From Octopus sinensis (taxonomy: Eukaryota): a stretch of 64,000 bases of DNA. A program made the translations under genes and the position numbers. This document shows, piece by piece, positions 919 through 53,849 of the stretch (positions are counted from its first letter, which is position 1; every line of letters begins with the position of its first letter). Location: the NCBI RefSeq assembly GCF_006345805.1, contig NC_043009.1, positions 70,680,001 to 70,744,000 of the forward strand, given 5' to 3'. The notes under the pieces are model-generated. The model worked only from the letters and a program-made list of their open reading frames with translations, had not been told where the DNA came from and made no database searches.

Positions 919-1275
919 TTTTATCTTGAATCAGTCAAATGACCGCGGCCATGCTGGGGCACCTCCTTGGAGGGTTTTAGTAAAACAAATTGACCCCAAG
1001 ACTTAATTTTTTAAAAAACAGTACTTATTATATCGGCCCCTTTTGACGAACCGCTAAGTCACGGGGACATAAACACACAAACACCAGTTGTCAAGTGCTG
1101 GTGGGAGACAAACAGAGATACAAAGACACGCTCAAACACAGATATATGTGAATGTATGTGTGTGTGTGTGAGTACACGACAGGCTTGTTTCAGTTTCCGT
1201 CTACCAAATCCACTTATAAGACTTTGGTCAACCCGAGGATGCAGTACAAGATACCTGTGCAAGGTGCCACGACTC
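919..1275 (-). mobile_element. tRNA-derived SINE (octopus type), 5' head truncated, with LINE-derived 3' tail
   Basis: Body (gctaagtcacggggac, tttcagtttccgtctaccaaatccac, gcaaggtgccac) matches a cephalopod SINE as I recall it. On the minus strand the 3' end reads GGTGCCCCAGCATGGCC + hairpin + AAGATAAAA, the same motif as the LINE 3' ends in this window. Confidence 0.8.
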
Positions 1276-1464
1276 ACACATACATACACACATATATAAA
1301 CACAGATGTAGGTTCGAAATAACAAGCATTCTCCTCCCTATCTTTTCTACTAACTCGCATACATTTTCTGTAAGAAAAAAATCATTCGTGTTGAATCTCT
1401 GAAACGCGGCGAAAGACCTAACTAAACAAGGAACCAAAATTCTAGACTCTCTACGCCAATTCAA

Positions 1465-1625
1465 TCTCTCTCTTTCTCTCTCTCTCTCTCTCTCTCTCTC
1501 TATATATATATATATATATATATATATATATATATATATATTATATATATATATATATATATATATGTATATATATATATACAGAGAGAGAGAGAGAGAG
1601 AGAGAGAGAGATAGAGAGAGGGAGA
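1465..1625. repeat. Compound microsatellite (TC)n-(TA)n-(GA)n
   Basis: Directly visible; the arrangement is self-complementary. Confidence 0.95.
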
Positions 1626-1922
1626 GAAGATAACAACTAGAGCAATAAGTAACAAAGAGAAGTGGATCATTGGTGTTTGAAAGTCATTAATTTAATTTGG
1701 AACATTTACAGCTGTTTCTGTTTATCAAACTGGAGTAAATTTACATTTACTTCGTTACATTTAACAAACATCTTCAGAATGAAAAGAGATAATACACCAG
1801 GAGTGCCTACGGATACATCTACCGATGGTTGCATAACCTCTAACTTATATCTTGCTTAACCTATATATATATATATATGTGTGTGTGTGTGTGTGTGTGT
1901 GTGTGTGTGTGTGTGTGCGTAT

Positions 1923-2335
1923 ACAACTTATAAACAAGGGCAAAGAAAAAAATTCTAATGCCAAATATGCCGAAAATAGACAAATCGTCAATAACCATTT
2001 AATTTATCACTATAAGCACGCGTCTGGAGAATTTCTATTTTGGATATATTTGGGATACTTAAGTGTGCTCATGACTTAGTGTTTACTTCTTCCATGGGTA
2101 TAAGTAAGTATTTCATTTATTTCTTACCGTATTTATCGCTGACGAGGAGAAAATTCTTATGAATTAAAAGTGAAATTGGGACCGATAGGATAATAACGGA
2201 CTTTTTTTAGAAATGTATGTCGGCTTACTTCGAGACGTGTGCTTATAGTGATAAATTATATGGTTATTGATGATTTGTCTATTTCGGCATATTTGGCATT
2301 ATAATTTTTTTCTTTTGCCCTTGTTTATAAGTTGT
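1923..2335. mobile_element. MITE-like element with ~100-bp terminal inverted repeats
   Basis: 1923-2024 (acaacttataaacaagggc...cacgcgtc) is the reverse complement of 2234-2335 with a few mismatches. Non-coding ~210-bp interior, no clear TSD. Confidence 0.6.
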
Positions 2336-2429
2336 TTATTAATTTAACCTTTAAAGGTATTTTTAATAAGCTGGCCATTAAAAGAATTTTTTCGAAACAA
2401 TTTATCCTATATTAGATGTATATATATAT

Positions 2430-2632
2430 AGTTAATCCAAACAAGAAAACACAAAAAAACACAGCAACGCGAGGACGTGGAGCAAATAAAGTATTATTGG
2501 ACGCTCAGGAAAGAAGGGAAGAAGGAGGGTTTAACGTTTCGAGCGGAGCTCTTCATCGGAAACAAAAGAGAAGGAAAGATCCCGAGAAGGGAAGACAGAG
2601 GAAAAAAATTGCTGGCGGTGCTCACGAGGTCA
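2430..2632 (-). mobile_element. Penelope-like terminal (pLTR) fragment
   Basis: Flanked by (TA)n, contains a minimal hammerhead, and resembles 8060-8262. Confidence 0.6.
2529..2563 (-). ncRNA. Minimal type I hammerhead ribozyme, variant core CCGAUGA
   Basis: Minus strand: GTTT-CCGATGA-A-GAGC-TCC-GCTC-GAAA-CGT-T-AAAC. Stem I GTTT/AAAC, stem II GAGC/GCTC, palindromic ACGT stem III, GUU site. Confidence 0.55.
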
Positions 2633-50236: not shown

Positions 50237-50405
50237 GGAGAGTTTACGAAAAAAACAAAAGACAAAGACAGGTGGTGTACAAAACAAACAGATGTATTAG
50301 TATAACGCTCAGGAATAGAAAAACTCTTTTACGTTTCGAGCCTACGCTCTTCTACAGAAAGGGACTAAGAAAAAACAAGGAGAGAAAAACATGTGTGTAG
50401 TGGCT
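50237..50405 (-). mobile_element. Penelope-like terminal fragment
   Basis: Same family as 13982-14135; TA-flanked; carries a hammerhead-like motif. Confidence 0.6.
50326..50361 (-). ncRNA. Minimal hammerhead ribozyme, variant core CUGUAGA
   Basis: Minus: CTTT-CTGTAGA-A-GAGC-GTAG-GCTC-GAAAC-GTA-AAAG; stem I CTTT/AAAG; GUA site. Confidence 0.55.
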
Positions 50406-52077
50406 AACGATCTATATATATAATACGTACACTATATATACATACATATATATATATATATATATATATATATATATATATATATACATAATACGTACAT
50501 ACATGTGTACACACACGCTTGTACGTGTATACACACGTACACACGCATAAATACACACATACCCACATCATTTGAACCCCGCAGAACAGAACCCCGCAAC
50601 ACAATTCAGAAAACTACTCACAACCATTCTCCCCAGAGACTAATATTTTCCAGAGAAACGTTGTTGTTTATAAACGCACTTCACACTTTCTCGGAGCGTT
50701 GCAATTTATCATTTGTCCAGAACGTTCTAGATTATGTTTGCCGTTACGGCATGCACAAATACTTTCTTCTGCTTCAATTAATAGATGCAACCACAATATT
50801 TTTTTCTATTCTGTTTATGTTTTATTTTTTTTTACTTAATGATGTAGACTATGTTTGTTTGTGTTTTTTCTTTTATTTATTTATTTATTTTTGATGTTGT
50901 GATACTTATTTTGATAAACAAAAAAATAATATTGCTGATCTTTCTGCTCTGTTTCTCAAGTTCGTACTTTGATTTTCATGGCGTTGTTTAAAATTTCCTT
51001 CAGACATAATAATATATCCGTGGCTAACGGCTTTCCACTGTCTATCATTGATGTCAGTTGGTAGGGCACGGAAAGAAATCATGTTGACTCCAAAAGCTTG
51101 ACTGAGTAACATGAGTTTGTACACACAAGTCTGCTTGTGTGTATGTGTGTGTGTGTGTGTGTGTGTGTGTGTGTGTGTACATACATTCATACATACAAAG
51201 TGTGTACATGAACATGTCTATCGTTCCCTATGCATACACACACGCTTATATTCATACTTCAATATACATACAAGCCTATGCACATGAGTGTGTGTGTGTA
51301 GACTAGCAAATTAAAAAAAACTGGCAGTAGCAGACCATCGTCTACGGCCATTGATATGAATCGCTAGCGTCTGAACGAATTAATTCGCGCACAGAAAATT
51401 CACAAACGTACAGCCAGCGATTTTGGCTGTTCAGTCATCTCCCATGCATTGCCCACCTAATATCCGGTTCCCTCCGATTTCCACCTGTTTGACTGAAGGA
51501 AGCAAAGTCTTTGCAGACAGCGATTTGATGTTTCAGAGGAAGAGAATGTAGCTATGAAAGCGTGTACAGAAATGCAGTAATTTTTTCAAGGGGGATTTTG
51601 AGAGTTGCATCGATTGGCATGAAGACTATGGTAAGTTGTGTCTTTATGTAAAGGACGAGTTACTCCCTCAACACGTGTTCAGTATTCGGAACAGCCTTTT
51701 TAATAAAAATAAGTTATGCTCACGTTTTTGTTACCTTCAGGACATGTTGCAAATTTTCAAGAGGGAAGAACATCATTTTGGAGCTTTCTAACTCGCAGCG
51801 TCTGTGTAACTTGACGTTTGCACTTTCAGCGATTTTCTTCGCTCTACGAAATTCTTCCCAAAGATGCTCAGCAAGGAGATTCTTCTGCGGGTTTTGCGAT
51901 TGTTTTGACCCCTCCTTATACTTGAACATTATTGCAGTCTCTCGTGTCCTGTGGTACTTTTTCTTACCAATATTAGCTCAGCAGTTTGTATATTTAACCA
52001 CGACAGGATGCTCTTTGCATTTGGGGCAATACCATCCAACGTCATCGCTATATAAGTCGGAAGACACAAAACTTGAA

Positions 52078-52230
52078 CCACCACCGCTTGACAATTGGCT
52101 TATTTCCGTCCCCGTAACTTAACAGTTGTCCATAAGAGACCGATAGATTAAGAACCAGACCTTGAAAATTAATGCTTGGGGTTGATTCATTCGGCTAAAG
52201 GAATTCTTCAAGGAAAAGATAAAAGATATG
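52078..52230 (+). mobile_element. SINE 3' fragment (family of 919-1275) lacking the LINE-derived stem-loop
   Basis: ccaccgcttgacaa..ccgtccccgtaacttaac..ggggttgattcattcggctaaa..cttcaagg joined directly to the AAAAGATAAAAGATA tail. Confidence 0.7.
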
Positions 52231-53213
52231 TATGTGTGTGTGCCATCGTTCAGTTTTATTTCAAGAGTTCTTGCCAATAGAAAAAGAATCGGTTTCTAAC
52301 CTAGATTCAAGGCTTCTTCATTGGAATTTCTACTTCAACAACAGGGTATTTTGCTTGCATGCATGCATGCATGTATGTATGTATGTATGTATGTATGTAT
52401 GTATGTATGCATGCATGCATGTATGCATGCATGCATGTATGTAGTCGTGCTTTAGAACCTACTCACCTGACGACGTGAAGGAACACAGCTATTGTTGGAT
52501 CTTATAAATGCAATAAGTTGCATAATATATGAAACACCAATTAGCAGCCGATAATGATGCTCAGGTACAACCGTAGTGTTTGGGATTAAAGCTAGGTCAT
52601 TCCATCTTCTTGTATTATGATTTTATTTACGTTTATGAGTTGTGTGGCAATGACCGGATTTCTATATATATATCTAGTAGTAAAAGCAGAATTCTTGCTG
52701 TATTATAGCCGACACTCATGGAGAGACTTTGCGAAACCCGGTATTAGGCTATTGCCCAGATGATATATATACATATGTATATATATATATATATATATAT
52801 ATATACATATGTTATATATATATATATATATATATATATATATATATATATATTATATATATAATCATATGTATATAATATATATATATATATATATATA
52901 TATATATACATATGTATATATATATATATATGTATATATATGTATATATATATATATATATATATATACATATATATATATATATATATATGTATATATA
53001 TAGTATATATATATATATATATATATAATATACTATGTATATATTATATATATATATATATACATATGTATATATATATACATATTATATATATATATAT
53101 ATATATATACATATGTATAATATATATATATTACATATGTATATATATATATGTATATATATATATATATATATATTATATATATATATATATATATATA
53201 TATATATATATAT

Positions 53214-53590
53214 ACTTTGATACTTTGATACTTTGATAGGTTTCGGCCATTATTGGCCAGGCCATGTCTAACTTAATAGCACCACCTGGTGAAGTCTTTC
53301 AAGTCAAATTTTGGCACTATGGCCTACTCAAGTAGAGAGTTATTGTTTACAGAGACATATCCGGGTGTAGGGGGTTTATCCGGGATTTCTTGAAGGAATC
53401 TGTTCAAAGACTTCTTGAACCCTATAGGGTCAGTTTCTGTTTTTAATGTGTTTTGGTGTAATGTTAAAGAGAGCGGGGCCATTGAAGTGAATATTGTGCC
53501 GTATTGTTGTTATGAGATGAGAGTGCGATTTTTTTTTGGGCGGATGGCACGGGGCCCAAGCCTGGATGTACCTTAAAGGTGATGCCACAT
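53214..53590 (-). mobile_element. APE-RT LINE family 4, short 3' fragment (copy F)
   Basis: Minus: HFNGPALFNITPKHIKTETDPIGFKKSLNRFLQEIPDKPPTPGYVSVNNNSLLE; 3' CATGGCC-T-GGCCA-ATAA-TGGCC-GAAAC and (ATCAAAGT)3 tail. Confidence 0.85.
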
Positions 53591-53849
53591 CATATATATA
53601 TATATATATATATATATAATATACATATGTATATATATATATAATATAATATAATATAATATAATATATATATTATATTTAATATATATATATATATACT
53701 ATATGTATATATATATATATATATATATATAACATATGTATATATATATATATATATATATATACTCTCTTACTCTTTTACTTGTTTCAGCCATCCGGCT
53801 GAGGCCATGCTGGGGCACGCCCTTGTTGCTACCCTCTCTAAGTCCTTTG

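Follow-up and report, generated by a model that had tools for sequence, protein, structure and literature searches.

A two-hairpin 3' tail common to a CR1-like LINE clade and SINEs of the octopus genome, a probable RNA recognition module

Stringent long interspersed nuclear elements (LINEs) are recognised via a 3' stem-loop, which is borrowed by their partner short interspersed nuclear elements (SINEs) (PMC3747384). This stem-loop is bound by the protein encoded by the LINE open reading frame (ORF) 2 (PMC4176376), and CR1 elements require a hairpin and a microsatellite (PMC8665684). In bivalves, CR1 tails are common to SINEs, and their stem-loops and compensatory mutations have been offered as evidence of partnership (PMC4824008, PMC4758252). 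No cephalopod entry appears in the 2013 table of LINE/SINE pairs (PMC3747384). In octopus genomes, SINEs are reported to be the principal retroelements, with links drawn to genome rearrangement and neural expression (PMC8967140, PMC12988792). The element considered here is a short, two-hairpin 3' tail present on several LINE copies and one SINE copy in a 64,000-nucleotide (nt) stretch of the Octopus sinensis genome (NCBI RefSeq assembly GCF_006345805.1, contig NC_043009.1, positions 70,680,001 to 70,744,000 of the forward strand), which is referred to as the window. The two hairpins are named SL1 and SL2, and SL1 is built around a 17-nt sequence, GGTGCCCCAGCATGGCC (the 17-mer).

The closest described systems are UnaL2/UnaSINE1 of the eel and ZfL2-1/ZfL2-2 of the zebrafish. 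As in these, a short conserved stem-loop tail is followed by a tandem repeat, a SINE carries the same tail, the stem tolerates compensatory change, and the loop is lineage-specific (PMC4176376, PMC3747384). Unlike these L2-clade elements, the octopus elements end in two abutting hairpins, with SL1 invariant in sequence and SL2 variable, a predicted arrangement. The amniote CR1 3' end (Suh 2015, cited in PMC8665684) offers another close likeness, with a single ORF2 encoding an apurinic endonuclease and a reverse transcriptase (APE+RT), a very short 3' untranslated region (UTR), massive 5' truncation, and a hairpin followed by a microsatellite with an 8-nt unit. This octamer is nearly fixed in amniotes, whereas the octopus unit varies by lineage, and the octopus tail further differs by its strong (TA)n association and its two hairpins. 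Mollusc LINE tails common to tRNA-type SINEs are represented by the bivalve CR1-14_CGi and CR1-1_CGi with BivaV-SINE2, BivaCORE-SINE1, and Vhc_1, from which the present case differs by its host class (cephalopod) and its tail sequence (PMC4824008, PMC4758252). What is particular here is the invariant SL1 beside SL2, the lineage-specific loops and repeats, the conservation among octopods, a SINE with more than 100,000 tails, and the (TA)n link. A literature search, with Repbase and older subscription papers outside its reach, found no paper printing the 17-mer or the SINE head.

The tail is probably the 3'-terminal RNA recognition module of one stringent, CR1-like APE+RT LINE clade, borrowed by SINEs; this assignment is made by analogy with the systems above. 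Its recurrence in the window far exceeds chance. The 17-mer is found six times (five exact occurrences and one with a single mismatch) for an expectation of 0.02, and none of 100 shuffled sequences reaches six. In the whole assembly (2.72 Gb, 13,516 contigs, the basis of all genome counts given here), there are 23,199 exact copies and none of the reversed control. The 12-mer core CCCAGCATGGCC counts 42,068 copies, and the C6T variant GGTGCTCCAGCATGGCC, which is the form borne by the main SINE, 108,727. A covariance model trained on 18 family-level tails, family F being left out of the training, detects exactly seven modules in the window, six of them at 46-67 bits and the seventh being F. Two of these, on C copy 2 and A/B copy 2, come in addition to those of the initial annotation of this stretch. 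The elements concerned and their modules are the following, with L numbers designating individual loci:

919..1270, minus strand: SINE1 copy, decayed and 5'-truncated, 74% identity to positions 112-444 of the full copy L001
920..973, minus strand: tail module of the SINE1 copy, exact 17-mer at 947-963, SL2 CGGTC-ATTT-GACTG at 945-932, covariance model 46.4 bits
27935..28777, minus strand: LINE E, ~840 bp, 5'-truncated, ending in (AAGGATTT)n, 96.5% identity to L086 and 91% to L087, (TA)n on both flanks
27949..28002, minus strand: tail module of E, exact 17-mer at 27976-27992, covariance model 64.6 bits, two adjacent hairpins in the minimum free energy (MFE) fold
30163..31909, plus strand: LINE C copy 1, 5'-truncated, ending in (AATC)n, 94-96% identity to L081/L082
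31840..31893, plus strand: tail module of C copy 1, exact 17-mer at 31850-31866, covariance model 66.5 bits
36596..37694, plus strand: LINE A/B copy 1, 5'-truncated, ending in (AAAGAGTA)n, 95-97% identity to A/B copy 2
37626..37679, plus strand: tail module of A/B copy 1, exact 17-mer at 37636-37652, covariance model 67 bits, predicted fold
38139..40247, plus strand: LINE C copy 2, 5'-truncated, 93-95% identity to L081/L082
40179..40231, plus strand: tail module of C copy 2, exact 17-mer at 40189-40205, covariance model 58.3 bits
53215..53591, minus strand: LINE F, short 5'-truncated fragment ending in (TATCAAAG)n, sharing a (TA)n tract with A/B copy 2
53232..53293, minus strand: tail module of F, covariance model 16.9 bits, E=6e-4, with F absent from the training
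53764..57039, minus strand: LINE A/B copy 2, the longest copy of the window, endonuclease and RT in frameshifted pieces
53776..53828, minus strand: tail module of A/B copy 2, 17-mer at 53803-53819 with one base deleted or changed (one mismatch), covariance model 62.3 bits

The structure of the tail emerges from an alignment with one tail per lineage (A2), which gathers 11 LINE lineages of this genome, four external LINEs, and three SINE families. With no structure supplied, RNAalifold folds A2 into two abutting hairpins. SL1 comprises a 4-bp basal helix, a G/G mismatch, a helix of G·U, U-A, G-C, and C-G pairs, and a CCCA loop. Its base is formed by the four bases located 5' of the 17-mer, whose partners are positions 15-17 of the 17-mer and the 'spacer' base that comes next, and its inner helix by GUGC with GCAU (including one G·U pair), closing the CCCA loop. 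The 17-mer, which the initial annotation had rightly seen beside the stem-loop and had taken for a flanking motif, is, thus, the core of a hairpin with a covarying closing pair of its own, so that the likely signal is the two-hairpin module. SL2 directly abuts SL1 and combines a covarying stem with a 4-nt, family-specific loop. This stem counts 5 bp in most lineages, rather than the 4 bp first drawn for all but F, the fifth pair joining, in most families, the C preceding AG.. to the G of GAAAC. On its 3' side, single-stranded (G)AAAC precedes the family-specific microsatellite.

Covariation is carried by three pairs, in each of which both partners change. The closing pair of SL1 (7:28) is UA in 8 lineages, CG in 3, GC in 1, and GU in 1; the fifth pair of SL2 (33:40) is CG in 9 and UA in 7; and the fourth (32:41) is CG in 15 and UA in 2, both U-A cases being SINEs. 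At the family level, 94.9% of the cells of A2 form pairs, versus 19.5-50% when the partners are slid by 1-3 columns, and the corresponding values for a copy-level alignment of 102 copies are 88.9% versus 20-36%. The covariation score amounts to 0.181, compared to 0.102 ± 0.012 after shuffling, and is reached in none of 500 shuffles. On the tree built from the upstream sequence, pair 7:28 underwent at least four double changes. Both CAGCU/AGCUG (L012, L068) and CAGCC/GGCUG (L019 and the young E copies) are present within the E lineage, which implies at least two double changes at 33:40. G·U pairs, invariant at 12:23 and found at 10:25, 7:28, and 30:43 in some families, point to a structure of the sense-strand RNA, since neither DNA nor the antisense strand fits them. 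When the families are folded singly, each yields two hairpins, with z-scores between -1.85 and -3.4.

The five stem-loops listed by the initial annotation were all recovered on reading the sequence, and its statement that stem position and loop length are kept, with compensatory C-G/U-A swaps, is borne out by the alignment. Two strings need correction. The E tail ends in AAAAC instead of AAAAAC, and the F hairpin, correctly positioned, has the consensus T-G-GGCCA-ATAA-TGGCC-GAAAC, from which the window copy lacks one G. In the window, E presents SL1 (GCGGU ... GCCGC enclosing the 17-mer), SL2 (GGCC-UUCG-GGCU), and AAAAC. C copy 1 presents SL1 (UGGC/GCCA enclosing the 17-mer), SL2 (CAGCU-CAUA-AGCUG), and AAAC, and A/B copy 1 presents SL1 (GGGC/GCCU, with G·U as the closing pair), SL2 (CAGCC-GGAU-GGCUG), and AAAC. 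In C copy 2, SL2 is broken by a 1-nt deletion (CAGCC-AUGA-GCUG).

Family F, whose size is 1,830 or 2,259 copies depending on the count, keeps the architecture with another sequence. Its SL1 has the same base (CAGGU/GCCUG; G·U, U-A, G-C) and a longer tip (CUA-UUAAGU-UAG), as F reads GGUGC[UAUUAAGUUAGA]CAUGG where the other families read GGUGC[CCCAG]CAUGG. Among the 100 F copies listed, one carries CUG...CAG in place of CUA...UAG. SL2 (GGCCA-AUAA-UGGCC) is followed by GAAAC, and the F tail folds into two adjacent hairpins (MFE -22.9 kcal/mol, z = -3.07), despite the missing middle of the 17-mer. The ORF of F ends in ...FKKSLNRFLQEIPDKPPTPGY..., compared to ...FKVGLDLFLSGVPDEPTSRQ in family C, and F shares the short end-of-ORF motif FKxxLxxFLxx(I/V)PDxP with the other lineages. 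In the window, the F and A/B copy 2 tails (53215-53828) lie in the same orientation, ~170 bp apart, within one (TA)n tract.

The LINEs carrying the module encode an endonuclease (Pfam Exo_endo_phos / Exo_endo_phos_2) and an RT (RVT_1), as found in ORFs of both the window and the genome loci. In the window, RVT_1 is detected at 30540-31016 in C copy 1 (1.2e-12) and, as a partial domain, at 36426-37136 in A/B copy 1 (1e-09). A/B copy 2 bears Exo_endo_phos within 56164-57039 and RVT_1 within 54426-55777, and its homology with other lineages extends to 56792. Longer genome copies have ORFs of 694-807 amino acids (aa), ending 21-100 nt before the 17-mer. The module, 20-100 nt past the ORF2 stop codon, thus, sits in a very short 3' UTR just before the microsatellite tail, in line with the likeness to stringent pairs that had been suggested for this locus. 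More than 2,000 protein relatives of ~1,000 aa display the same APE+RT layout. The C, E, A/B, and randomly sampled lineages can be aligned upstream of the tail, for a length of at least 650-1,500 nt and with 67-78% nucleotide identity, and they form one tree. They, therefore, constitute a single APE+RT LINE clade, in which the shared motif is inherited and not convergent. The hairpin is, indeed, common to four LINE families and a SINE, as the initial annotation had it, although the families are related by descent within this clade and cannot count as four independent witnesses.

Conservation of the module is uneven along its length. The 17-mer is unchanged in all LINE lineages found, whereas the neighbouring 10 nt, the SL2 loop, and the repeat unit vary. 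Every tail terminates in a lineage-specific microsatellite, the unit of which is AATC, ATAAA, AAATC, AAGGATTT, AAAGAGTA, or TATCAAAG. The 17-mer is also exact in an Argonauta hians LINE, whose ORF2 shares 56% aa identity, and in three LINEs of other public assemblies (63-87% identity). The putative clade is, on this basis, present in octopods, including Argonauta. The distant homolog L091 (44% aa identity) lacks the 17-mer and terminates in (AAGT)n, so that the module does not extend to the wider protein family as a whole. The elements combine one APE+RT ORF2, a short hairpin-bearing 3' UTR, a microsatellite instead of poly(A), and heavy 5' truncation, which are CR1-type traits. Octopus repeat annotations include active CR1 families (PMC13282606), a circumstantial indication for clade placement.

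The only LINE sequence at the end of two unrelated SINE bodies is precisely this module, which makes a good case for a partnership at the clade level. That the module was borrowed by at least two SINE families is the best reading of these data. In the abundant SINE1, the tail reads GGCGGTGCTCCAGCATGGCC-G-CAGTC-AAAT-GACTG-AAACAAGT(AAAGAGTA)n. Its homology with LINE A/B is confined to the last ~64 nt (87.5% identity) and spans from position -5 of the 17-mer through AAACAAGU(AAAGAGUA)n. A/B is the best LINE match to the SINE1 tail, AAACAAGT(AAAGAGTA)n being common to both, and their SL2 hairpins differ by one compensatory pair and two loop bases. The full SINE1 head opens with GGCGCAGGAGTGGCTGTGTGG...GGTTCAGTCCCACTGCGTGGCACC, and a 22-mer taken from it has 39,441 genome copies. 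The window copy starts inside the body, without the RNA polymerase III (pol III)/tRNA-like head, and only (TG/TA)n and unrelated sequence are found beyond ~1270. It retains SL2, with one G·U pair, and has lost SL1 (-1 C>A); its fold is no better than those of shuffled sequences (z = -0.16).

SINE2 is a young family of ~250 bp, with 414 exact 33-mers genome-wide and a head opening with GGCGCAATGGCCTAGTGGTTAGGG... Its homology with the C lineage covers the tail from about position -11 onward, and its tail (CAGCT-CAAG-AGCTG, AAACTGG(AAAAC)n) is of the C-lineage type, including the U-A closing pair of SL1. Copies were met among the random loci:

L005, L008, and L027, minus strand of each locus: SINE2, ~250 bp ending at the locus centre
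L016: truncated SINE2

Older SINE subfamilies (L061-L080) share a 3' body of 80-100 nt and a C-type 17-mer. Ahead of the 17-mer, this body reads …AATAAGTACCAGGCTT…GGGGTCGATT…TTCGACTAAA…TTCAAGGC. NAAT is the prevailing SL2 loop among them, and the repeat units resemble AAAAGAAT. In one older family (L063/L069/L079), SL2 is bulged and reads CAGGCC-AAT-GGCTG.

If UnaL2/ZfL2 and CR1 are taken as models, the ORF2 protein would bind the hairpins of its own transcript. The ORF2 endonuclease would nick DNA, preferentially in (TA)n tracts, and reverse transcription would be primed at the microsatellite end. Copying would often halt early, even just beyond SL1, leaving tail-only copies. SINE RNAs with the same module would hijack the LINE protein, namely those of the abundant SINE (>100,000 tails) and those of the small young one (~400 copies). 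It is possible, though doubtful, that the tail further works as a two-part address code, with SL1 as a clade-wide handle and the SL2 loop plus microsatellite as a lineage address. A conserved part of ORF2 would then read the SL1 17-mer in a sequence-specific manner, and at least five LINE lineages would coexist without cross-mobilisation. The dominant octopus SINE would keep the common handle together with an SL2 used by no living LINE, which would imply either that SL2 is read loosely or that the partner is rare or extinct. If true, such an address code, combined in an APE-type LINE with a preference for (TA)n targets, would represent an unusual design.

Other explanations account for part of these observations. 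All lineages belong to one clade and several families are young (94-98% identity between copies), as would be the case if the tail were a functionless relic of descent, its bearers being young derivatives of one master with too little time to diverge. This can be considered highly improbable, since lineages differing by 22-35% in the 650 nt just upstream, as well as in their loops and microsatellites, keep all 17 positions, the 17-mer is retained in Argonauta at 56% aa identity, and the stems change by paired swaps instead of single mismatches. Repeated tail exchange between co-expressed LINE and SINE RNAs, through template switching or recombination, would also produce identical 17-mers in the place of selection. 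SINE tail swapping is documented in general (PMC4824008, discussion), and SINE1 and SINE2 must each have gained their LINE tail in this way. Nevertheless, exchange would carry neighbouring sequences along, while each lineage has its own SL2 loop, microsatellite, and 4-10 nt preceding the 17-mer, in agreement with the upstream tree. The -4:+18 pair, moreover, covaries across the 17-mer, which argues for evolution in place. Exchange as the source of the identity is, thus, very unlikely. Taken together, the invariant SL1 sequence, the covarying stems, and the free loops argue for a putative selection on the element, rather than for youth or tail swapping.

The hairpins could also serve 3'-end formation, stability, RT pausing, or second-strand priming, without being recognised by the RT. 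The ~11 tail-only copies out of 29 would fit a structure, or a bound protein, that blocks cDNA synthesis. Such another role is unlikely, as the adoption of exactly this segment by two unrelated SINE bodies is the signature of a trans-acting recognition element, the G·U pairs are incompatible with a structure of DNA or of the antisense strand, and the equivalent hairpin of the experimentally studied UnaL2 and ZfL2 is the ORF2 binding site (PMC4176376). Recognition by the RT is the preferred role. The initial proposal of an RT recognition signal is supported to this extent and is widened to include SL1, its function being read from comparison.

Several points weigh against the recognition module as formulated above. 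The first concerns the partner of SINE1. Its stem, CAGTC-AAAT-GACTG, was on no LINE lineage tested. The A/B family (230 copies) reads CAGCC in 100 of the 100 copies listed, and a single genomic match joins A/B- or L214-like GCAACNNNGGC upstream sequence to CAGTC. The data point, as the initial annotation proposed, to the LINE clade that would mobilise the SINE, and not to the family. If the loop is read as strictly as in ZfL2 (PMC4176376), the SINE1 partner would be rare, extinct, or unsampled, whereas any lineage could serve SINE1 if recognition depends on the invariant SL1. The base of SL1 in SINE1 is also reduced to 3 bp, with A:G or A:A at -4:+18 in 35 of 40 copies and no pairing there in 37 of 40. 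Regarding the structure itself, informative variation is limited to three of 13 pairs. The inner helix of SL1 is invariant in the families carrying the 17-mer, its support coming from energy prediction and from F alone, and the relatedness of the sequences means that the shuffle controls overstate significance. In two external LINEs, L089 and L212 (63% aa identity), the fifth SL2 pair is C×C (CAGCC-TTCG-CGCTG and CAGCC-CTAG-CGCTG), and this sub-lineage may have a hairpin of 4 bp with a 6-nt loop. Regarding the clade, membership of CR1, versus L2, is putative and based on architecture. BLASTP between 82 residues of F and the other lineages is not significant, and the nucleotides are not alignable; we infer the membership of F from its tail shape and the short peptide motif. 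Finally, the sequence data show the anatomy, the copy numbers, the conservation and covariation, the predicted folds, and the flank composition, from which ORF2 binding, priming, and SINE mobilisation are deduced by analogy.

Insertion sites are associated with simple repeats. A (TA)4 or longer tract directly follows 15 of 29 random LINE tails (loci L002-L030), versus 11% of control windows (p=2e-7), and (TA)4 is found at 9 of 30 SINE1 5' junctions, versus a background of 8% (p=6e-4). In the window, each of the five 5'-truncated LINE copies is flanked on either side by (TA/TG)n, and in the LINE-bearing tracts (27000-41000 and 52000-54000), (TA)n accounts for as much as 69% of a kilobase. These APE-type LINEs may, on this evidence, favour (TA)n as a target. 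Approximately 11 of the 29 random LINE-type matches are tail-only, stopping within 10-30 nt upstream of SL1:

L002, L003, L004, L006, L007, L010, L011, L013, L021, L022, and L023: tail-only LINE insertions, ~45-70 nt

In these copies, the RT seems to have halted 0-30 nt upstream of SL1, which concentrates the points of truncation at the 5' border of the module.

The SINE of this locus had been labelled a tRNA-SINE, a term that the data do not confirm; the window copy is headless. ARAGORN, at its default threshold, predicts no tRNA gene in 19 SINE-bearing loci, and Rfam returns no tRNA in the isolated heads, even at E<=10. Only when its threshold is lowered to 70% does ARAGORN yield a cloverleaf, which is degenerate and Ser(GCU)-like, in SINE1, and still none in SINE2. 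Pol III boxes can be read by eye, using TRGCNNAGTGG as the consensus for box A and GGTTCGANNCC for box B. SINE1 has TGGCTGTGTGG and GGTTCAGTCCC, and SINE2 has TGGCCTAGTGG (box A-like, 11/11) and GGTTTCGATTC. A tRNA origin is plausible in the light of the octopus SINE literature (PMC8967140, PMC4824008).

If the recognition module is confirmed, the LINE clade behind the SINE expansion would be named, and a compact 54-nt RNA element would be defined and could be mutated. The covariance model would also offer annotators a precise 3' anchor, tail-only copies included. The general understanding of stringent LINEs is unchanged, the principle being already known.

Metagenome contigs were also scanned for the 17-mer. 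Among 120 stretches, 80 were examined, none of them with the hairpin context, and these matches were rejected as true relatives, being chance matches in unrelated, mostly GC-rich contigs. Rfam matches to mir-297, mir-466, and mir-1277 in the loci were likewise set aside as artefacts of (TA/TG)n. Window positions 32000-36000 (and also 28800-30100) are very AT-rich, with a GC content of 0.148 over 4 kb, and consist mostly of imperfect (TA)n, which yields many spurious long ORFs on both strands. An unrelated repeat of ~275 bp is found at 3628-3858, 29174-29614, and 33724-34002 of the window, with 70-73% identity to positions 1958-2232 of L088; its partly overlapping register suggests a tandem or satellite-like element.

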